Program-made: the position numbers and the translations under genes
The notes under the pieces: generated by a model
What the model was told of the DNA's origin: nothing
What the model saw: only the letters and a program-made list of their open reading frames with translations
The model's database searches: none
NCBI GenBank assembly: GCA_950097015.1
Contig: CATNEN010000029.1
Location: 5,642,001-5,706,000 of the forward strand
Direction of reading: 5' to 3'
From: Macrostomum hystrix
Taxonomy: Eukaryota; Animalia; Platyhelminthes
DNA: 64,000 nucleotides
Part shown: positions 15,397 through 54,057 of the stretch, one piece after another
How the letters are laid out: each line of letters opens with the position of its first letter
Position numbering within the stretch: position 1 is the first letter of the stretch

Positions 15397-18211
15397 ATGG
15401 AAAGCACAGGTAAATAGTATAGAAAAATAGTAGTTTGATACTGGGTTGATATTGGTGAAAAAATAGTAGAAGATTTGTCTTTATCCCAGCCGGCGCAGGC
15501 ACCACTGTACTGCGCGTGCTCTCCTGGAACACCGAAGGCCTCAATCAAGAGCAGCTGTCTGCCCGCACAGAGGCCGTAGCTGCGTGCATCCTGGCTCACG
15601 ATGTTGACGTTGCCCTGCTGCAGGAGGTGGTGCCGGCCAGCTTTGACCAGCTACTGCAACGCTTAGCCAACTATCGCCTGCTGCCTGGCGGCCACACCGA
15701 TCACTATTTTGTTGCCACGCTGATTAAAGACTCGCTGCAATGCCTTGATTGCCGAGTATTGCCTTTAGATAATTCTCGCATGGGTCGCTGCCTGCTAGCC
15801 TGCAGTGTTCAACTAGGTGACCGGCAGGCCCGCCTGTTCAACTGCCACCTGGAGTCTGGCGCTTCTCAGGCTGTTCAACGGCGCGCCCAGTTGGTCACCT
15901 GTCTGCGCGCCATCGCTTCGTCTACTGCCGGACCGCGCTGCCTACTTGGTGAGCGAGAGAAACTTTTCTTTAGGATTAACGACAGGACTAAACAAAAGCC
16001 GATTCACTGTTCAACAATAACATCAAATTAGAGGTCTCGCTGTTTATATAATTTCTTAAATAAATACTTCAAATCTTAAACTGTCTCTTACAGAATCGCC
16101 CCCAAATCTTACAGGATCGCCCGAACTCTAACAAGATCGCCCCAACTCAATCAGGATCGCCCCAAATCGTCCAAATATTAGGAAATCGCTCCAACATCCT
16201 AGGGAATCGCTCCAACATCCTAGGGAATCGCTCCAACATCCTAGGGAATCGCTCCAACATCCTAGAGAATCGCTCCAACATCCTAGGGAATCGCTCCAAC
16301 ATCCTAGGGAATCGCTTTAACATCCTAGAGAATCGCTTTAACATCCTAGGGAATCGCTCCAACATCCTAGGGAATCGCTCCAACATCCTAGGGAATCGCT
16401 TTAACATCCTAGAGAATCGCTTTAACATCCTAGGGAATCGCTCCAACATCCTAGGGAATCGCTCCAACATCCTAGGGAATCGCTCCAACATCCTAGAGAA
16501 TCGCTCCAACATCCTAGGGAATCGCTCCAACATCCTAGGGAATCGCTTTAACATCCTAGAGAATCGCTTTAACATCCTAGGGAATCGCTCCAACATCCTA
16601 GGGAATCGCTCCAACATCCTAGGGAATCGCTTTAACATCCTAGAGAATCGCTTTAACATCCTAGGGAATCGCTCCAACATCCTAGAGAATCGCTTTAACA
16701 TCCTAGGGAATCGCTCCAACATCCTAGAGAATCGCTTTAACATCCTAGGGAATCGCTCCAACATCCTAGGGAATCGCTCCAACATCCTAGAGAATCGCTC
16801 CAACATCCTAGGGAATCGCTTTAACATCCTAGGGAATCGCTCCAACATCCTAGGGAATCGCTCCAACATCCTAGGGAATCGCTCCAACATCCTAGGGAAT
16901 CGCTCCAACATCCTAGGGAATCACTCCAACATCCTAGGGAATCACTCCAACATCCTAGAGAATCGCTCCAACATCCTAGGGAATCGCTCCAACATCCTAG
17001 GGAATCGCTTTAACATCCTAGGGAATCGCTCCAACATCCTAGGGAATCGCTCCAACATCCTAGGGAATCGCTCCAACATCCTAGGGAATCGCTCCAACAT
17101 CCTAGGGAATCGCTCCAACATCCTAGGGAATCGCTCCAACATCCTAGGGAATCGCTCCAACATCCTAGGGAATCGCTCCAACATCCTAGAGAATCGCTCC
17201 AACATCCTAGGGAATCGCTCCAACATCCTAGGGAATCGCTCCAACATCCTAGAGAATCGCTCCAACATCCTAGGGAATCGCTTTAACATCCTAGGGAATC
17301 GCTCCAACATCCTAGGGAATCGCTCCAACATCCTAGGGAATCGCTCCAACATCCTAGGGAATCGCTTTAACATCCTAGGGAATCGCTTTAACATCCTAGG
17401 GAATCGCTTTAACATCCTAGGGAATCGCTTTAACATCCTAGGGAATCGCTCCAACATCCTAGGGAATCGCTTTAACATCCTAGGGAATCGCTCCAACATC
17501 CTAGGGAATCGCTCCAACATCCTAGGGAATCGCTCCAACATCCTAGGGAATCGCTTTAACATCCTAGGGAATCGCTCCAACATCCTAGGGAATCGCTCCA
17601 ACATCCTAGGGAATCGCTCCAACATCCTAGGGAATCACTCCAACATCCTAGGGAATCACTCCAACATCCTAGGGAATCGCTCCAACATCCTAGGGAATCG
17701 CTCCAACATCCTAGGGAATCGCTCCAACATCCTAGGGAATCGCTCCAACATCCTAGGGAATCGCTCCAACATCCTAGGGAATCGCTCCAACATCCTAGGG
17801 AATCGCTCCAACATCCTAGGGAATCGCTTTAACATTCTAGGGAATAGCATAAACAATGCATTCCTAATTGGCTTATTCGCATCACTAGGCGGTGATTTGA
17901 ACATCCTGTGTAGCGACGAGTTGAAAACAGTCGGCGGCCTTCCAGACGGTGTATTGGACGCATGGGAAGCTAGCGGCAGGCCGAAAGGTGAAAAGTACAC
18001 CTGGGATGCTTCCAAGAATGTTAACGCCAGCCGGAGATGCGGACGCCGTTGCATCGGCCGACTATTGCGGTCCAGCTACAGGCCAGATCGCCTGCTAGTC
18101 CGCGGCATGGCCGTTGATCGATTTCAACTGTGCGGACGCGACCGACCCCCGGGTCTTCAGCTGCACACCTCCGATCACTACGGACTGCTGGCAACGCTGT
18201 CACTAGACTGA
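15397..18211 (+). CDS. TDP2: Tyrosyl-DNA phosphodiesterase 2; exons 15397-15409, 15490-15948, 17889-18211
   Basis: EEP-nuclease motifs SWN, LQEV, HLES, GDLN (formed across the splice CLLG|GDLN), TWD, DR and SDH. GT-AG junctions are in compatible phase. Confidence 0.88.
16185..17840. repeat. 21-bp tandem array (CTCCAACATCCTAGGGAATCG), ~79 copies, in TDP2 intron 2
   Basis: Unit is directly visible. The MLERFPR-repeat ORFs are its translation. Confidence 0.97.
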
Positions 18212-25919: not shown

Positions 25920-27031
25920 CTATGAATTCGACATCAGGTGCAAGAAGTCCTCGTGGAGCCAGATCAGATCTCCGTCCTGCCAACTAGCCGCTCGGGTCGC
26001 GTCGAGTCTAGTGAGGTTCTCCGATCTCCAGGCGCTGTAATTTCGGCTAAAAAAGAAGTCGAGCACAGTCGTACGATCACTCCCGATCATGTGCCGTCCC
26101 AGAAACTCCATCTGCACAAAGGCCACCTTGAAATCGCTGAACAAGCGCCCCGATGTCCTCAGGAAGTCGGCCTCTCCGCCCTCGATGTCCAGCTTGATGA
26201 CCACATTCTTGTTGCCGATGAGTCCGCACAGCCGCTCGCTGCGCACGGGCATCACGGGGATCGTGTCCGTCACGGCTCTACCGAACTTGGTCGCTCCTCC
26301 GACGTTGCAGTCGGCAGGGAAGTTCAGGTAGCTCAGCTGGTCTCCAGATCCGATGAAGTTCCACACGAGTGACGCGTCGAGCGCCGCCGCGTCCAGACTG
26401 AGCCGCAGTCGCAGCAGGTTGCGAATGTTGGCGTCAAGCGACACGACGGGAAATCCGAGTCTAGCGGCCAACAGGCTGTAGACGCCGATGTTGCAGCCCG
26501 CGTCCAAGGAAGGTCGCGTTCGGCACTTTCAGTGCAAGCTTCATGACCGAGTGCACAATCTCCGGCTCCCAAGTGTGATTGATGACAATCGCACCAGATA
26601 TTGCGTCCAATTCTGGATAGACGAACATGTGCACGAATCTGTGATTGAAGTCCAGAAGCCTGGCAACTGTACTACCCCGTCTGACAATGTCCAAAAGCTG
26701 TATGTTAAATGGTTTCTGCAGGCTGCAAAGGGGATACTCGTTGTCTGTCACTGAATACGCAACGGCATTCTTGCAAAGGATGTGTTTAAAAGCGGTGTGA
26801 AGAAAGTCAAACTGGCGTAGCTCCCGGAAGCTGTTGCATTTCACCTGCTTGTCGGCCTCGCTCTCGATCAACAGCGCATCGCAGAGAGCTCCATCCAAAC
26901 GGCAGCTGGCACGAGTGTCCAACTGATCGCTGTCCATCTTGGAAGTTTCTCTTCGTGAGCTGCGTTACCAAGTAGATAGTGGCGCACGCGACTAGTGCAG
27001 CAGACAGGAGTCTCCGCTTGAACAGGGCCAT
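25920..27031 (-). pseudogene. FkbM-type SAM methyltransferase paralogue with two frameshifts (pseudogene or consensus error)
   Basis: Three overlapping ORFs (27031-26807, 26937-26461, 26507-25920) stitch into a homologue of 31466-32704. There is an extra T at ~26516 in the FLDAGCNIG codons and a second shift between ~26960 and ~26850. Confidence 0.8.
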
Positions 27032-27720
27032 GCTGAGCAGTTAGCAAAATTTAATGCCTCGCTGGTCAGGCTATACGAGCTCGTATATGATTAGCTTGAA
27101 ATACGTTTTAAGCCTCTCAGTTAGTTAATAAAGATTTCTGCCGGAAGCAGGTGCATCAGAATCGTGACTGCTAGCTCGCCAGTCGTAAAATAATTTTGTT
27201 TGCTCTGGACTCACTCGCTCAGATTTCCATTAGCCTTTCCATTAGGAAATTGTCTTTCAGTATTGTAGACGCTCATATGGGGTATCCGCTTATACGCTCG
27301 TATGAAGCACTGCAATCCAGAGGTCCTAAATTGCTTGCACACACGCAGTACAGTTTCAGGACTAATTATGACTTTTGAATGACGCCATTTTGCCACTAAT
27401 TAACGACCTCTTAAAGTAGGTGTAATATTAAAAACTTATACAGGCAATTTATTTGCAGTAAAACTTTGTTTAAATATTCGCCGATTCATAATTTTCAATC
27501 AGCATCTATTTTTGACCAAGATCGGCGCAATAAACAGCGAAGAACGGGTAAAAGTACAAAAATAATATAATAAGCGAGCGAACAAAGAGCCAGACAAAAT
27601 GAAGTGAAGCAATTGTCTCAAAGCTTAAATATCGGATTCAATACTTGGTTTTGAGTGCTTAAAATGTCTTGGCACGAGTTCCATAGACCATAGGTGAGTT
27701 CCATAGGTGTGAGCCTTATA

Positions 27721-28206
27721 GTGCCCGCTATTTCAAGCAGATATCCACTGGCGGGCGAAGTCTGTCAGTTTACGCCCAGTAGACACCAGTCGCTTTTACC
27801 TGCAGGCAATGCGGAATCCAACTGAGACATGTTGGTACAACAAGCGTCCACGTGGAAAGAATACCGTTTCAACCATAATATATAATATAAAAATAATTAT
27901 TGCAGGAGGGCTGCTGGCAATGACACATAATTTGATGACACTAGACCCGCAGCCAGCGAGGAGGCAATTCTGCCCATTTCGCTGACTCCTGAGCACACAC
28001 GCACACAGATACCGTACGCAGGCATACGCTCACACTGGTGTGTACATCTGCCCTGACTTTCTCATCGTCAGGCAGTGTACACTCTCACTGTGCCTTAGAG
28101 GTTGGCCCTTGAGGGCGTAAATTGCACGACAAGCCCCTATACCTTCTCTCCGCGGCTGCGCCCCATAAAGCCCGCCAGTGGACTATCTGCTTGAAATAGT
28201 GGGCGC
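27721..28206. mobile_element. MITE-like element with ~36-bp TIRs and TA flanks, containing a 5'-truncated SINE A
   Basis: TA|GTGCCCGCTATTTCAAGCAGATATCCACTGGCGGGC at 27719-27756 versus GCCCGCCAGTGGACTATCTGCTTGAAATAGTGGGCGC|TA at 28170-28208. Confidence 0.7.
27880..28168 (-). mobile_element. SINE family A copy 3 (tRNA head missing)
   Basis: Body and tail match copies 1 and 2; the copy stops at CCCCATAAA adjacent to the TIR. Confidence 0.85.
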
Positions 28207-31200
28207 TACGCGCTACGCGCCTCAACGTTTTACCTCGTTTCAGCCCTGTGCAGCCTATCAATATTGGTATAATTCACACTCTCTCGGTTAATGCACACTG
28301 CACGTTTAAGAACTATCGTGCTTGGCAGTGCTAAAATAAATAAATAGTGCTAAAGTAACCAGAAAGCTCCATATACAACTAAATTACGACGTAGAACAAG
28401 GTTTAGCGGAAGATAACAAATTCACTGAACGAAACCTGCATTGAAAGTCAAGAGAGGATTTTGGTCCAGTACGCTGTCAGCAGCGCCTGCACATGTTCGA
28501 ATGCTATCTTCGAGGAATGGTTCACCGTTCACTTCCGTTCACTGCGGCCAGTAATTTCTTACCGTCTTCGAATGCTCGCAACGCTCTTGGTTTTTTTATT
28601 TAGGCAGAGCGTAATGCTTCTGTCGCCTCCGTCGATAACTTCGATTATCAATCTATGCTTTTCGTCGCTATTCTTTGCATATTGCACAGGCGGTGCTCCG
28701 GCATATTCGGCAGCGATTTCGTCGATGTCTTAAAATCGTGCTGGCTTGGTCACAATTTTGTTTGACATGATGGAAAAACTGAGAGTGGAACGGCATTGAC
28801 AGCGCTGTTTATCGGCTTTAGTGCTTACGAGAACTCGTAAATGAGTTCTCCAAAGGATTAAATTGCCTGCCGGTTTGAAACACATTTTACCATAGACAAC
28901 AAGCAGTGAAGCTCAAAATGCGTGTTTTTGCTATCATCATGGAGAAAATTGCTTGCTCGTAGTCTCTACCTTTATTACTATATTACTGTAACACTCGAGG
29001 ACTCGATTGCAGAAGTAAGGAAGACCAATGTAGTGTCAGCTTGTTTGCCCGTGTTATTATTCAGTACGTGTTTTTGCTAAGAGTTCACCCACGCCAAGCC
29101 GGGCCGGACCAGCTTGGGGGAACGGACGCCCACCACCCCGCGAGCGCTACCCCTGGGCTACGGTCCCGGCCAATCAGCGAGCGACCCGGCCTCACTACCT
29201 GTCTACCCTCGGCAAGAAGCGACCCCGGGGCTCAGAACGGCGGTCGCAAGTCTACTGCGATTTGTCGCCTTGGCTCAAGCTACAGCCAGGCATCCACCTC
29301 GCCGATCGACCTAATTTGGGGTTAAAATGACTCTACATGTATATAACGAAGCGTGTTTTTGTAGTCCAAATTATCTTTTTCTCCGCAATTCGCCTCACAC
29401 TGTGAGAAGCACGTGCAAATTATCGTTCTCCGCAATTCGCCTCACACTGTGAGAAGCACGTGCAACTAGTCCACTTGTTTTGTCCCTCCCCGCCCGACCA
29501 CACTCCGCTTGTTCAGTTAGGTAGCTTTCGGCGCTACGCGTCTTGAGAGTGCGCCGCTGACAAGGGTGGTCTAGATAGGCGCTTGTTGTCGAAGTCAGTA
29601 CGTGCTCTCTTCGGAGACTCCGCCGTCAGGCAGAAGGAGTGCCAACCGATAGGATCTGTCGGGGCAGCGCTGAAAGCAGAAACAACCGGAGCCTCTCGGG
29701 AAGAGTAGGGCGCGGATGTAGTCCAGTTAAGTAAAATTGTTATATCCAAATTGTCAGACCAGACTTGCTTCTCACTGTGAGCACGCTATAATTTATTTCC
29801 GTGCGAACATCTATTCTGTCAGTATATAACTTTTAAGTCAAGTAAACGATATTCAAAGTAATTCCTATTCGTATCTGAAATCTTAGTCACAGCCGATTAA
29901 CTCACTCCTAATCAAATTATTCGAGTCTTCGCGTTCATACTGTGTTATTCTTTTTCATTGGGAGTTTCGCCGGGCCGGAGGACGACACACGGGTCTCATC
30001 GCTTATCTATTCCACTTCGCTCGCTACCAGTCTCTAACGCTATTTAATTCCAGATTTCCCTGCTGCATATTGAAACGATTGGTAGGACACCGACCCCGGT
30101 GAATAGTGAATAGTCGCTAGCTTTAAATACCTCACGCTCCAGCTAGGACATTCATTTTATTACACCAAGGCTGGACTTAATAGTGTAGCGGCGATGGACT
30201 CTCTTGATATTACTAAGATAACGGCCCCAACTCGAATATGGACTATTGTATTTATTTGACTGCCTAGCAAAATAGTATTAACAGTCTCTGATGATGCTGG
30301 CGATTCAGCAGCTCCACTTTTAGCACTATTACTACGCTGAGTCCAAAACCACTGGTAACGGGACAGCCCGTGGCGCATGAAAACACATCAGCTTTTAAAT
30401 ACGGCGCGCAGATACATTAAATATAGCTAGTATACGACAAACGCACTTTCAATGCTGCATAAATAATGAATAATATATGTACTGTTATAGATTTAATATA
30501 GATGAATAGGAGACATTACACATTAATAAACTTCACTAGGAATACAAAAATGCAACTCCCATAGAAACTAAAAATTCATAGATAAACAACGACAAAATAC
30601 GACTATAAAATAAATGACATCGTCACAAGTTACTATATATAGATTATATACTAAAATATATTATATATTACTATTGACTGTATATTATTATTGCTATATA
30701 ATTACTATTGTAATATAGAATCTGTAGACCAATCTACTAGCTTGCAAAATGCTACACTTATTTATTTTATTTTTAGCTCGTATAGTTCATTATCACCCTC
30801 TGTGGATTCATTAAAGCGTTAAAAAATTTAATTCAATAGAGGCATAGGATCAGCTGCAAATGCTTGTATCATACGGCTTGTATATTTAGCACAGAAGCCG
30901 CAGCTGTTGCAGATTGGCCCATTGAATGCTGACAGTGTGTAGTCGAACCCAGCTTAATCGGGTTTGAGTAGGGCTTGAATTTACAATAAGCCATGCAGTT
31001 CCGGGGTAGGAAGCTTTCTTTCAGACCCAAAATGTTCACTCCCCCCATTGCTACGAGCGAATAAGCTGAGCGCAGTCAAGCGAAGATATTAAAATGTGTA
31101 AGTGCGAACCCAAATAACCAACCCTTCATGGTAGCTATACTATATAGTTCCGCGCTATAAGCACCGTTGTTGAATGTAGGGGCCAGCTCTGTACGAATTG

Positions 31201-31465
31201 TGCTGATACTGCAGGCCTCGCAGCTCGCTTGTTTAACCAGCAGCCAATAAGGGGGGTCGAGGGACGAAGCCCGCGCTATCAAGACGAGACCAAATCGGCG
31301 TACTCTGAAGCGACGCCTGTATACAATTATTTGTCTTGGCTGAATTTCAGCACTCGATAAAGAGTGATATCGGTGCTGGGCGCTTTGTGACGCTTATAAA
31401 GACGCTTATTGTGGAAGATTAGACGAATACGTTCAAGATTCGGACAGCTGTCAGCAAAAACTCAA

Positions 31466-32704
31466 ATGATTCGACCGAAACAGAGGATTCTGTTGTTGGT
31501 CTCTTGCGCTGCAGCATGCATCATCGTGTATTTTCTGAGCACCAGAACGAAGGAGCAAGCCAATCTTACGCAGAGCAGAGACCTCGCTAATGGTAGACCG
31601 GATCTACACAGGCAAGCCAACAGTGTGGACTCGCAGGCCTCTAATCTCGTTGAAATTAAGGAAAGCTCCGATAAGGGCCACGAGAAAGCTACAGAAAACG
31701 ATGCAGCACAACCCGGTCCTATAGAGAAGCAAGCCGTCACGCCGGTCGCTGAACTGCGAACAAAAGTTCTGGAGCAGATCAAGACAGGCTGCAAAATTTA
31801 CAGCGAGCTGCGCAATGTGGACTTCCAGCAACCTGCTCTCGAATACGCAATGTGCAGCAACGCCAAGGCCTACGAAAAGAAGGCCGACGGTTTCCCTATG
31901 TGCAAGCTGAAGAATCCGTTTCATGAGAGGGTCCTAAGCATTGTGCGCTCTGGAAGCGCAACCACGGACCTACTGGACATGAACAATGCTAAGATGCAAA
32001 TGTTTGTTTATCCTGAAAAGGACTACATTTCTGAACGCATAAAAGCGCAGCATCAGTGGGAGCCTGAGTTAGTCCATACCACACTCAAGCTTGCACTCAA
32101 AGTGCCGAACGCGACCTTCCTGGACGCGGGCTGCAACATCGGCGTCTACAGCCTGTTGGCCGCTAGACTCGGATTTCCCGTCGTGTCGCTTGACGCCAAC
32201 ATTCGCAACCTGCTGCGACTGCGGCTCAGTCTGGACGCGGCGGCGCTCGACGCGTCACTCGTGTGGAACTTCATCGGATCTGGAGACCAGCTGAGCTACC
32301 TGAACTTCCCTGCCGACTGCAACGTCGGAGGAGCGACCAAGTTCGGTAGAGCCGTGACGGACACGATCCCCGTGATGCCCGTGCGCAGCGAGCGGCTGTG
32401 CGGACTCATCGGCACCAAGAATGTGGTCATCAAGCTGGACATCGAGGGCGGAGAGGCCGACTTCCTGAGGACATCGGGGCGCTTGTTCAGCGATTTCAAG
32501 GTGGCCTTTGTGCAGATGGAGTTTCTGGGACGGCACATGGTAGGGAGTGATCGTACGACTATCATCGAGTTTTTCTCCAGCAGAAAGTACACCGCATCGA
32601 GGACACCGACACTGACTGCGTTGGATGCGAAAACTGCTGCAACCTGGCCTGACGGTGATATCTTGTGGATTCACGAGGACTTTCAGCAGCTTGTCCGACG
32701 CTGA
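31466..32704 (+). CDS. Intronless type-II membrane FkbM/Methyltransf_21-family SAM-dependent methyltransferase (412 aa)
   Basis: Short basic N-terminus and TM (ILLLVSCAAACIIVYFL), then a stem. WEPE, motif I FLDAGCNIGVYSL, KLDIEGGE and VQMEF match FkbM-family signatures. Confidence 0.85.
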   Translation: MIRPKQRILLLVSCAAACIIVYFLSTRTKEQANLTQSRDLANGRPDLHRQANSVDSQASNLVEIKESSDKGHEKATENDAAQPGPIEKQAVTPVAELRTKVLEQIKTGCKIYSELRNVDFQQPALEYAMCSNAKAYEKKADGFPMCKLKNPFHERVLSIVRSGSATTDLLDMNNAKMQMFVYPEKDYISERIKAQHQWEPELVHTTLKLALKVPNATFLDAGCNIGVYSLLAARLGFPVVSLDANIRNLLRLRLSLDAAALDASLVWNFIGSGDQLSYLNFPADCNVGGATKFGRAVTDTIPVMPVRSERLCGLIGTKNVVIKLDIEGGEADFLRTSGRLFSDFKVAFVQMEFLGRHMVGSDRTTIIEFFSSRKYTASRTPTLTALDAKTAATWPDGDILWIHEDFQQLVRR

Positions 32705-50342: not shown

Positions 50343-53300
50343 TCACAGTCGCGACAGGCCGACCAGCCGGCGAACCTCAGCCATTGTGCAGGCTGCCTCA
50401 GTGGCTGCAGCCTCTCGACCGGCCCGCAGGTGTCGCCCCACCTCCGCCAGTCCGTCTGGTGTAGTCGTGAGCTCCTGATAGCGTCGGCGAATCGGCCGCA
50501 GGCGCTCCAGCACAGCGTCGGCCACCAGGCGCTTCAATGCGAGCTTGCTGTCCACCGGGCCGTGCCTGGCCAGCGCCTCGCCAGGTGAGCAGCCGGTCAG
50601 CGCAGCCAGCAGGTGGATGAGGTTGGCAAGGCCCGGACGCTGCTCCGGATCGTAGGTTACACCTTTGGCGGAGTCGGTGACAGCGGACCGCAGCTTCGAC
50701 CAAATGGCGTCATCCGAGTCCGCCAGGCCAATGCGCGATGCTGCGTCCGGATCCGACTTGCTCATCTTCCTACATTCGAAAGAGGAATAGGGGATTCCCG
50801 ATTTAAATAGGGGATTCCCGATTTGAATAGGGGATTCCCGATTTAAATAGGGGATTTCCGATTTGAATAGGGGATTCCCGATTTAAATAGGGGATTCCCG
50901 ATTGGAATAGGGGATTCCCGATTTAAATAGGGATTCCTGATTTGAATAGGGGATTCCCGATTTGAATAGGGGATTCCCAATTGAATCGGGGATTCCCGAT
51001 GGAATAGGGGATTCCCGATGGAATAGGTGATTCCTAATTTGAATTGGAGATTCCCGATTGAATAGGGGATTCCCGATGGAATAGGTGATTCTCAATTGAA
51101 TAGGGATTCCAGATGAAAGAGGAAATTTCTGATTGGAATAGGGAATCCTCTAGATGCAATTGAGAATTCCTGTTAGGAAAATGTAGTCTTGTTTGTAGCT
51201 TTGAAAATATAGAGAGAGATAATATTTTATGTAGTTATTATACTGCGCCTCAATAATATTTGCAGGCACTGACGCTTTATTTGAGCACTCGCAGGGATGC
51301 TATTCCGTCCATTTCGTTGACCCTGAGAACATCCGCCCTGACTCGAAATCATTTCGCCTCATGGGCGTAAACTGCACTATTAGCCACCAAGCCTGTCTCT
51401 CTGCGGCTGCGCCCCAAATGAATGTTGCCTCGCCGCGGATTCGAGCTCGGGTACTTGCTTAAAGTGCAAGAGTCAGACGCGTCACCCCTTTGCCACTCGA
51501 CCCTCTCGCTCTGGAAATGCAACTCTTACTTAGTGGGGTCCCGCAGGCTGCGCACTCGGCTAGCGTAGGCGCCCAAGCCAGTAGCTTCGGCGGGCAGCAG
51601 CGGCTCCGGCCTTGGAAACAGGCGGCAACCGTAGCGTGAGTTGAACCGGTCGGCCAGCTCCCTGCTCAGCTCGACGTGCATCCGCTGGTCGTCGCCAACC
51701 GGCACGTGGCTGGCACGGTAGAGAAGGATGTCAGCAGCCTGCGGGTTTGTTTGACTTTATTTAATCTTCAAATGTTTACATTTCTACTTTTAGTAGTGTA
51801 AAGAGAAGTATTTATATAAAAATATTTTTTTCACTGAAAATCAACTAAAATATCTTCTGTTTCGCTTCTAGATTTTAAAAGATATGAAAGTTTATAAAAC
51901 TTTCCTTGAAGATCAGATCAATTAACACGCAGACATCCGAGCTTACAAAGGCAGACGATAAATGCTTCAAAAAGTTCATAATTCATAATTCAGAGAGGAC
52001 TGATGATATGTCGCAGTAATAAAATAATAATAATAATAACAATAATGATGTATCTAATTGCAACAGGGCTGCGGGCAATTACACATCGTTTGGTGACAGT
52101 AGACCCGCAGCCAGTGAGGAGACATTTCTGCCCGTTCCGCTGACTCCTGAGCGAACAAGCACATACACACACATACACACTCATACATACACACACACAT
52201 ACACACACACACAGATACCGTACGCAGGAATTCGCTTACATCAGGCAGTGTACACTCTCACAAGTCTCCAAGCCTTCTCACTGCGGCTGCGCCTTAAATG
52301 AATGTGGAATCACCACGGAATCGAGCTCAGGGAACTTAGTGCGAGAGGCGAAAGCAGTTAGACCGCTCTGCCACCGACCCCGGATGATAACTGATAGTAA
52401 CAGAGTGTAACATTGAATTCCATAGCACTCACCTGCAGCAGCGGATAGGTGAAATATGGCGGCATTGTTGTACGGTTTCTCACGCCAATTCGGCAGATGC
52501 TGCAGCTTGGCTAGCGGGCAGAGCGCGGCGAGCAGCCACTGCAGATCCGTGTGGCCTGGCACCTGAGGAGCCAGTTAAACAAATTGGATACTTATCCTCA
52601 TTCTCCTGTGCACGCAGATCCATAATCTTGATCTCCAACCATCAGATCCCTACTTCCCAATCCCTTCATCTCCAACCATCAGATCCCTACTTCCCAATCC
52701 CTTCATCTCCAACCATCAGATCCCTACTTCCCAATCCCTTCATCTCCAATCATCAGATCCCCAATTCCCAATCCCTTCACCTTCAATCATCAGATCCCTA
52801 CTTCCCAATCCCTTCATCTTCAACCATCAGACCTCTACTTCCCAATCCCTTCATCTTCAACCATCAGATCTCTACTTCCCAATCCCTTCATCTCCAACCA
52901 TCAGATCCCTACTTCCCAATCCCTTCATCTTCAACCATCAGATCCCTACTTCCCAATCCCTTCATCTCCAACCATCAGATCTCTACTTCCCAATCCCTTC
53001 ATCTCCAATCATCAGATCCCTACTTCCCAATCCCTTCATCTCCAATCATCAGATCTCTACTTCCCAATCCCTTCATCTCCAATCATCAGATCTCTACTTC
53101 CCAATCCCTTCATCTCCAACCATCAGATCCCTACTTCCCAATCCCTTCATCTCCAACCATCAGATCCCTACTTCCCAATCCCTTCATCTTCAACCATCAG
53201 ATCCCTACTTCCCAATCCCTTCATCTCCAACCATCAGATCTCTACTTCCCAATCCCTTCATCTCCAATCATCAGATCCCTACTTCCCAATCCCTTCATCT

Positions 53301-54057
53301 TCAACCATCAGATCCCTACTTCCCAATCCCTTCATCTTCAACCATCAGATCCCTACTTCCCAATCCCTTCATCTTCAACCATCAGATCCCTACTTCCCAA
53401 TCCCTTCATCTTCAACCATCCGATCCCTACTTCCCAATCCCTTCATCTTCAACCATCAGATCCCTACTTCCCAATCCCTTCATCTTCAACCATCAGATCC
53501 CTACTTCCCAATCCCTTCATCTTCAACCATCAGATCCCTACTTCTCAATCCCTTCATCTTCAACCATCAGATCCCTACTTCCCAGACGTGGTGTTTCTAC
53601 TGTTAAGCTAGAGCGCATCTTCTAGGACGCGTCTGTTTCAGCCTACCTCTGACTGGCAGAACAGCCGGACAGTCGGCGAGTCCAACAGGCCGCACGCCAA
53701 GAGACTGGCCGCTGTCTCCATGGTGAGGCGCCGCAGCTCGGCCGGCTCCGGGCAGGCGGTCAGGGCGTGCAGGTCGACAACGCAGAACAGGCTGGGCGAA
53801 GACCAACTGTCGGCAGGCTGCGGGCTGCTGGCACTGGTCAGTGCGACCCAGTGCGACACTGCGCCCAGGTAGTTGCCCAGGTGGGGCACTCCGGTCGGCT
53901 GAATGCCGGACAACAGGCGACGCCGAGGTTCAACTGTCGCCGTGTCCGCCTTCTTCTTGACTTCGGTGGAGGACGACGATGAAGAGCTCAGGGCTTTCCG
54001 GAGCGCGGACAGCTCAAAAAATGGCCGAAGCATACGACAATACAATGCTCCTCGCAT
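50343..54057 (-). CDS. WARS2: Mitochondrial tryptophanyl-tRNA synthetase; exons 54057(or 54033)-53647, 52562-52433, 51738-51530, 50769-50343; +1 frameshift in exon 2
   Basis: [16 protein letters not shown] (HIGH-type motif), [34 protein letters not shown] (KMSKS), PGLANL, and a presequence-like N-terminus. Confidence 0.9.
50786..51150. repeat. 20-bp tandem array (AATAGGGGATTCCCGATTTA), degenerating rightwards, WARS2 intron 3
   Basis: Unit is directly visible. Confidence 0.9.
51310..51460 (-). mobile_element. SINE family A degenerate 5' fragment (copy 6)
   Basis: GCGGCTGCGCCCCAAATGAATGTTGCCTCGCCGCGGATTCGAGCTC matches the SINE head region. Confidence 0.7.
52020..52385 (-). mobile_element. SINE family A copy 7, WARS2 intron 2
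   Basis: Tail (AAT)n, body with an expanded (CA)n, and head GGAATCGAGCTC. Confidence 0.85.
52628..53585. repeat. 37-bp tandem array (AACCATCAGATCCCTACTTCCCAATCCCTTCATCTCC), ~26 copies, WARS2 intron 1
   Basis: Unit is directly visible. The ORF at 52628-53611 is its translation. Confidence 0.96.

Follow-up and report, generated by a model that had tools for sequence, protein, structure and literature searches.

The FkbM family of S-adenosylmethionine (SAM)-dependent methyltransferases is mostly bacterial, and its known activities include that of FkbM itself in FK506 biosynthesis, the 2-O-methylation of Nod-factor fucose by NoeI and the methylation of the Vibrio cholerae O-antigen by RfbT. An architectural parallel to the genes described here comes from the type II glycan-modifying enzymes of the Golgi, such as glycosyltransferases and carbohydrate sulfotransferases, in which a short tail, a signal anchor and a stem precede a lumenal domain, and which depend on a transporter for their activated donor. 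The plant lumenal methyltransferases of the SAMT-1/GoSAMT-type pathway belong to yet other families. This pathway, known from C. elegans SAMT-1 and plant GoSAMT, is a precedent for SAM import into the Golgi for the methylation of glycans and polysaccharides (bioRxiv 10.1101/2021.07.06.451061; PMC7614267). O-methylated sugars are dominant in planarian N-glycans, of which the major one is a trimethylated Man5GlcNAc2, and they are frequent in molluscs and nematodes too; planarians and oysters have an abundance of 3-O- and 4-O-methyl sugars, of several kinds (PMC3155867, PMC10301044). The animal methyltransferases responsible, among them those of the nematode SAMT-1 pathway, were as late as 2023 described as enzymes that 'remain to be identified' (PMC7614267). 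Here we report two inverted paralogues, copies A and B, in a 64,000-nucleotide stretch of the genome of the flatworm Macrostomum hystrix (contig CATNEN010000029.1, positions 5,642,001 to 5,706,000; hereafter the window). The best explanation of these genes as a whole, to which we assign a probability of roughly 0.5, is that they encode Golgi-type lumenal FkbM glycan O-methyltransferases.

The window is part of a 220-Mb genome of 42 contigs, and the closest matches of its proteins are from Macrostomum lignano. Open frames and repeat comparison agree with the initial annotation of this DNA in placing two paralogous genes here; the two are inverted relative to each other and separated by about 4.4 kb (27031 to 31466). 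The arms of the inverted repeat, at 25936-26571 and 32057-32691, are about 5.5 kb apart. The M. lignano orthologue of copy B is Mlig015726 (P0001), with a protein identity of 62-66%, or 69% outside the converted region considered further below. The features on which the comparison turns are:

31466 to 32704, plus strand: copy B coding sequence, one open frame in one exon, first ATG at 31466, stop codon ending at 32704, 412 amino acids plus stop
31487 to 31543, plus strand: predicted signal anchor of copy B, residues 8-26, after the tail MIRPKQR; Kyte-Doolittle mean 2.46 over 19 residues
31592 to 31738, plus strand: predicted disordered stem of copy B, residues 43-91, predicted local distance difference test score (pLDDT) below 50; unalignable, its length and sequence varying among paralogues
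32117 to 32149, plus strand: SAM-binding motif I of copy B, FLDAGCNIGVY, residues 218-228
32432 to 32455, plus strand: FkbM-type motif KLDIEGGE of copy B, residues 323-330; the TIGR01444 model aligns over residues 217-343
25920 to 27031, minus strand: copy A, ATG at 27031 (MALFKRR..., signal anchor), stop codon ending at 25920, about 369 amino acids if both excess bases discussed below are assembly errors

In the AlphaFold2 model of copy B (mean pLDDT 85.6, predicted template modelling score 0.76) a helix over residues 4-42 is followed by disorder over residues 43-91 and by a compact domain that begins near residue 95 and takes up the rest of the protein, the conserved domain comprising about 300 amino acids. 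Together with the hydropathy this bears out the type II topology of short basic tail, transmembrane helix and stem that had been annotated. The accompanying description of a cysteine-containing stem has to be dropped: in the paralogue alignment the near-invariant cysteines are C109, C130, C146 and C285, and all four fall within folded regions, namely the N-terminal subdomain and the catalytic domain, outside the disordered stem. The predicted lumenal part also contains two N-glycosylation sequons. Conservation was assessed in an alignment of 28 sequences (A2), comprising 21 paralogues, M. lignano sequences and two others, from Macrostomum and Plakobranchus and including P0008, and in a second alignment of 90 family members (A3). 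The invariant positions of A2 include D220, G222, N224 and G226 in motif I, D299, K323 in KLDIEGGE, and W401. Five residues, D220, G222, G226, K323 and D325, are invariant in both alignments, N224 is nearly invariant in A3, and E327 and E330 are near-invariant in A2 and A3. The motifs DxGxNxG and KxDxEGxE are hence conserved across the family.

The FkbM assignment is weak for copy B alone but firm for the family, on the evidence of sequence profiles and predicted fold. Copy B aligns nearly end to end with TIGR01444 (model positions 1-134 of 143), and the C-terminal piece of copy A passes the PF05050 cut-off with 24.0 bits. PF05050 is matched at E <=0.01 by 25 of 28 family members (best 3.7e-9) and the PF05575 (RfbT) model by two of the same 28, RfbT being found also among several of the nearest ESM Atlas clusters. 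The mollusc relatives pass TIGR01444, with 51.6 and 66.6 bits. When the ESM Atlas was searched by language-model features, 80 of the 100 nearest clusters carried PF05050 alone, and among the remaining domain sets displayed all but one included it. By shape, the ten nearest clusters all carried PF05050, with template modelling scores of 0.71-0.76 by target over 241-278 aligned residues and a root-mean-square deviation of about 3 Å. A VIA search of the PDB with the copy B model recovered class I SAM methyltransferases with Z-scores of 10-12; the sole FkbM entry among the structure matches was 2py6 (Z 10.2, 17% identity). Against the sequences of solved structures the family profile gave only weak motif-I matches, with a best E of 0.0026. 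It is thus at the family level, through PF05050, TIGR01444, the motifs and the predicted fold, that the FkbM-type SAM-binding domain of the initial annotation is upheld. Databases, for their part, label these proteins automatically as FkbM-domain proteins. Genes with an FkbM domain have been named in C. elegans as well, for example F49C12.2 and F49C12.12 (PMC13176968).

We counted the relatives of the pair by a six-frame search of the whole genome, which returned 41 matching stretches from at least 30 loci. The pair is therefore not special. Most of the loci are single open frames of 370-440 amino acids, and many are arranged in tandem clusters on contigs C38, C1, C7 and C39. All 22 full-length paralogues have one exon each and follow one layout, in which a basic tail of a few residues and a single hydrophobic 19-mer (mean 1.7-2.7) precede a variable stem and the conserved domain. 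The stem of one paralogue of 518 amino acids (L005:1486-3039 on G000:C39, minus strand) is a long alanine/proline repeat, with about 20 AAAAP-type units between the signal anchor and the catalytic domain.

Outside this genome, word-indexed protein searches with a single protein, A2 or A3 yielded few matches beyond M. lignano and two mollusc proteins, and an exhaustive profile search was needed to reveal the extent of the family. It returned 13,033 matches at E <=0.001 and 230 at <=1e-30. Among the best approximately 150 profile matches, 113 of the 129 full-length proteins have an N-terminal hydrophobic segment, with a median start at residue 10 and, ahead of it, a mean of 2.9 lysines or arginines and 0.27 aspartates or glutamates. 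Such a segment was present in one of 12 bacterial relatives. From its sequences the family appears to be a signal-anchored, probably lumenal animal branch of a mostly bacterial family of soluble proteins. That its members are type II-anchored SAM methyltransferases of the FkbM family, with a predicted lumenal location and a predicted activity, is well supported by the hydropathy of the 22 paralogues and the 113 relatives, the motifs and the predicted fold, and on this point the earlier proposal stands.

The nearest kin of the Macrostomum genes are molluscan. Among 30 matches looked up, all named relatives outside Macrostomum were uncharacterised mollusc proteins (from Haliotis, Crassostrea/Magallana, Mytilus, Pinctada, Dreissena, Ylistrum, Physella, Bulinus and Plakobranchus), except for one from the dinoflagellate Effrenium. 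The mollusc proteins, named 'Methyltransferase FkbM domain-containing', resemble those of Macrostomum in having a basic tail, a signal anchor, a stem and the FkbM domain. They score 130-290 bits against the Macrostomum profile, which in some of them also matches the N-terminal subdomain, but they are only about 22-29% identical to copy B and group apart from the Macrostomum clade in the tree. Some of their genes have introns; the Physella gene has five coding exons (four introns), and one Haliotis gene has a single exon.

The bacterial FkbM-family O-methyltransferases share with the animal proteins the class I fold, DxGxNxG, KxDxEGxE and a near full-length TIGR01444 alignment. They differ in being soluble, 11 of the 12 checked having no N-terminal hydrophobic segment, and in lacking the cysteine-bearing N-terminal subdomain of the animal proteins. 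In a search of bacterial genomes the matches were 23-32% identical, started at query residue 139 or later and covered the core alone, with E no better than 2e-11; the N-terminal subdomain was covered by none of them. The best bacterial match is a 272-residue PF05050 protein of Mesorhizobium captivum (L034:3890-7568), whose gene has as neighbours those for an LPG_synthase_TM-like membrane protein, a second methyltransferase and a GT4 glycosyltransferase.

A quick maximum-likelihood tree, with 12 bacterial sequences picked by pattern match, does not establish a single eukaryotic clade but does place these 12 behind a starred branch. In this tree 28 of the 29 Macrostomum rows, along with one unnamed metagenomic row, form a starred clade with a support of 97 in the Shimodaira-Hasegawa-like approximate likelihood-ratio test (SH-aLRT). 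The exception is the M. lignano protein P0107, which sits on a long branch outside the clade. Within the clade there are three starred subclades, each with members of both Macrostomum species, which implies that the expansion is old within Macrostomum. Judged by these sequence comparisons, we are dealing with an established animal family.

These results bear directly on the suggestion in the initial annotation that the genes are possibly of horizontal origin. A recent acquisition from bacteria would explain the absence of introns, and it draws on the mostly bacterial distribution of the FkbM family as well as on the single-exon state of the Macrostomum genes. However, we consider it highly improbable, in view of the weak, core-only bacterial matches with their uncovered N-terminal subdomain, the far better-scoring mollusc relatives with a signal anchor in common and, in Physella, a gene interrupted by four introns (notwithstanding the single exon in Haliotis). 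The position of all 12 bacterial sequences behind a starred branch (SH-aLRT 95) in the quick tree and the age of the expansion, which spans both Macrostomum species, speak against it too. An ancient transfer into eukaryotes is possible.

Based on these observations we propose the following course of events. The short cytosolic tail and the single signal-anchor helix would hold a flexible stem on the lumenal side of a secretory compartment, most probably the Golgi, and the lumenal part would act as a class I SAM-dependent methyltransferase domain of the FkbM family. SAM would be supplied to the lumen by a transporter of the MFS_5 (SAMT-1/GoSAMT) type encoded in the genome. The methyl group may then be passed to a hydroxyl on the terminal sugar of an N-glycan, an O-glycan or a glycolipid, and the many paralogues, numbering at least 30 and mostly single-exon, could differ in the sugar and the position that they modify. 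Lumenal location, Golgi residence, catalytic activity and glycan substrate are all points that we infer; the gene structures, the topology signals, the assignment to family and fold, the transcription, the number and kinship of the family members and the gene conversion described below are observed. Two loci encoding MFS_5 (PF05631) proteins were indeed found in the genome (G000:C29:8249154-8250661 and G000:C38:8156694-8157857; L031-L033), with 334 and 332 bits, so that the required import of SAM is possible in principle. C. elegans SAMT-1 and plant GoSAMT, both proposed to carry SAM into the Golgi, are members of MFS_5 (bioRxiv 10.1101/2021.07.06.451061). The likeness to the type II enzymes of the Golgi is one of architecture alone, as those have an unrelated catalytic fold and use a nucleotide sugar or 3'-phosphoadenosine 5'-phosphosulfate in place of SAM.

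As to the acceptor, we put the chance that it is a glycan, methylated on oxygen, at about even. What favours a glycan is the combination of an architecture like that of Golgi enzymes, the sugar-methylating bacterial members of the family, the GT4 neighbour of the best bacterial match, the flatworm and mollusc pattern of occurrence and the MFS_5 loci. The several distinct methyl sugars carried by oysters (PMC3155867, PMC10301044) would, furthermore, require several enzymes.

Lumenal or secreted FkbM methyltransferases could instead act on a substrate other than a glycan, such as small secreted metabolites, lipids or the side chains of secreted proteins of mucus or adhesive. The founding member FkbM, after all, methylates a hydroxyl of a macrolide and not of a glycan, the structural matches are generic, and enzymes for varied small molecules, too, typically show large lineage-specific expansions that diverge fast. 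Yet the type II, glycosyltransferase-like architecture is common across the family, the RfbT model is matched by two members and by several of the nearest Atlas clusters, and the phyla of the nearest kin are known for their methylated glycans (PMC10301044, PMC3155867). We therefore regard a non-glycan substrate as rather unlikely, while giving it more weight than any other alternative considered here.

Several further considerations weigh against glycan O-methylation in the Golgi, or dilute the evidence for it. The family as a whole is not restricted to sugars, as the macrolide substrate of FkbM illustrates. Copy B by itself falls just below the cut-offs of both defining models, with 21.1 bits against 22.7 for PF05050 and 36.0 against 37.7 for TIGR01444. 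The PDB matches obtained with Foldseek and VIA are generic class I methyltransferases, which are silent on the acceptor. Taxon names were obtained for about one third of the 30 matches looked up, so that the phyletic pattern is incomplete. MFS_5 proteins occur in many eukaryotes, including humans, and their presence is accordingly non-discriminating (bioRxiv 10.1101/2021.07.06.451061). In nematodes there are other candidate families, for example DUF268 (PMC7614267). Finally, a literature search turned up no glycomic data for Macrostomum; nor did it turn up a paper that characterises an animal member of the family or names an animal glycan O-methyltransferase.

Taking the family beyond this genome, we tentatively suggest, at slightly less than even odds, that the signal-anchored FkbM proteins common to flatworms and molluscs are the long-sought animal glycan O-methyltransferases, with their specificities distributed over the paralogues. 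If so, the 30 or more paralogues would encode specificities for 3-O-methyl-mannose and for 3- and 4-O-methyl-fucose, -galactose and -GalNAc. Such specificities would make invertebrate glycomes species-specific, and methylated glycans are also the targets of methyl-glycan-binding lectins such as tectonin 2. Methylated sugars are relevant to innate immune recognition and to lectin toxicity. The family offers a concrete and cheaply testable set of candidates, namely single-exon genes of about 1.1-1.3 kb with mollusc counterparts and a defined soluble lumenal domain, in a genus for which RNA interference and transgenesis are established.

The history of the pair itself is marked by a recent exchange between two old genes. 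In the flanks outside the tract listed below, copies A and B differ at a proportion of 0.79 of synonymous (pS) and 0.34 of nonsynonymous sites (pN), the synonymous sites being saturated, and by this measure A and B are old paralogues kept under constraint. In its 5' unique region copy B is 69% identical in protein to the M. lignano orthologue and 45% to copy A. In a block of 168 residues containing the tract the order is reversed, with 95% identity to copy A and 86% to the orthologue, and the synonymous divergence (dS) between A and B across the 168 codons is 0.058. The tract has these two sides:

26088 to 26543, minus strand: gene-conversion tract on the copy A side, about 455 nucleotides with two substitutions and one 1-nucleotide indel; flanks about 60% identical
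32085 to 32539, plus strand: gene-conversion tract on the copy B side, the counterpart of the former

The sequence comparison shows a recent gene conversion between the inverted paralogues that covered the catalytic core from motif I through KLDIEGGE. The locus is a clear-cut example of such an event having occurred recently between inverted copies that are themselves old.

To follow the expression and the state of copy A, the interval 26400-32399 was compared with four short-read runs of the same organism (X1, X2, X4 and X5), the evidence being assembled contigs. X1 is like a whole-genome run: its contigs total 197 Mb and cover the interval throughout. X2, X4 and X5, whose recorded kind is unspecified, behave as RNA runs: their contigs total 42-63 Mb against the 220-Mb genome, leave 30200-31200 almost bare and share a 763-nucleotide joint from 27795 to 28559 (GT..AG, minus strand) that X1 lacks. 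The stretches at issue are:

31212 to 32389, plus strand: minimum transcribed span of copy B (X5 31212-32389, X4 31306-32389, X2 31314-32128)
26944 to 26964, minus strand: frame break 1 (+1) of copy A, where the frame of the signal anchor gives way to the main frame; an AAA run is included
26506 to 26507, minus strand: frame break 2 (+1) of copy A, with TT opposite the single T of copy B, immediately ahead of motif I

In X2, X4 and X5 copy B is covered by single colinear contigs without gaps at a depth of 24-36, and is thus transcribed and unspliced. The contigs end inside the converted tract, so that the span they give is a minimum at the 3' side. The absence of introns that had been claimed for both genes accordingly stands for copy B, whose contigs are colinear with the genome over 31212-32389, while copy A as assembled is not open. 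Copy A is seen in the RNA-like runs at a depth of 4-8, over 26507-27074 in X2, 26509-26992 in X4 and 26675-26943 in X5.

The two +1 frame breaks in the assembled window, and a depth of 4-8 against 24-36 for copy B, would be expected if copy A were a decaying pseudogene with real frameshifts and copy B alone were functional. The contigs point elsewhere. The X2 and X4 contigs each have one gap relative to the window inside 26509-26992 and the X5 contig has none over 26675-26943, from which it follows that the gap most likely lies in 26944-26992, the sole stretch where the frame can change; the position here is deduced from the contig gaps. Formally the gap could also fall in 26509-26674, but there it would disrupt an open frame that is well conserved. 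At break 2 the alignment of the X1 and X2 contigs ends precisely at 26507, leaving seven loose letters, as expected from a 31-mer unitig if the reads carry a single T, given that the last A-specific base is the G at 26530. A real TT would have let the contig align about 30 nucleotides further.

Single excess bases of the window relative to the short-read contigs were also seen at 27661, 29084, 29114, 30057, 30067, 30318, 30627 and 30821, some of them lacking in every one of the four runs. It appears that one-base insertions are scattered through the assembly, and false frameshifts are possible in other genes too.

In view of the contig disagreement at or near both breaks and the many other excess bases, both breaks are probably assembly insertions, and copy A is probably an intact, weakly transcribed gene of about 369 amino acids. 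Outside the breaks it moreover keeps its open frame and conserved residues despite synonymous sites saturated relative to copy B. We consider its decay into a pseudogene unlikely. The initial annotation of copy A as a gene is hence probably right, although the open frame is interrupted in the sequence as assembled. Small introns were also considered as the cause of the breaks and rejected: the X2 and X4 contigs are colinear across break 1 apart from the one gap, and break 2 amounts to one base more than in copy B, within the converted tract.

Between the two copies, at 27457-28812 on the minus strand, lies a spliced and apparently polyadenylated transcript with exons at about 28812-28559 and 27795-27457, separated by the 763-nucleotide intron with GT..AG ends. 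In X2 a run of T precedes 27457 and the depth reaches about 4000; no long open frame was seen in the transcript at 27457-28812. Very high-copy repeats with many variant joints occupy 27800-28200, where the summed depth of X1 contigs is about one million, and 29000-30200, where it is ten to twenty-five thousand. A perfect 40-nucleotide direct repeat is found at 29379-29418 and 29426-29465. Elsewhere in the window long minisatellite-like tandem arrays appear as repetitive open frames at 10-962, 16147-17625 and 52628-53611, with translations that include MSPYQSLSNVSLSISLQCLPINL..., MLERFPR... and a proline/serine-rich unit of about 32 residues.

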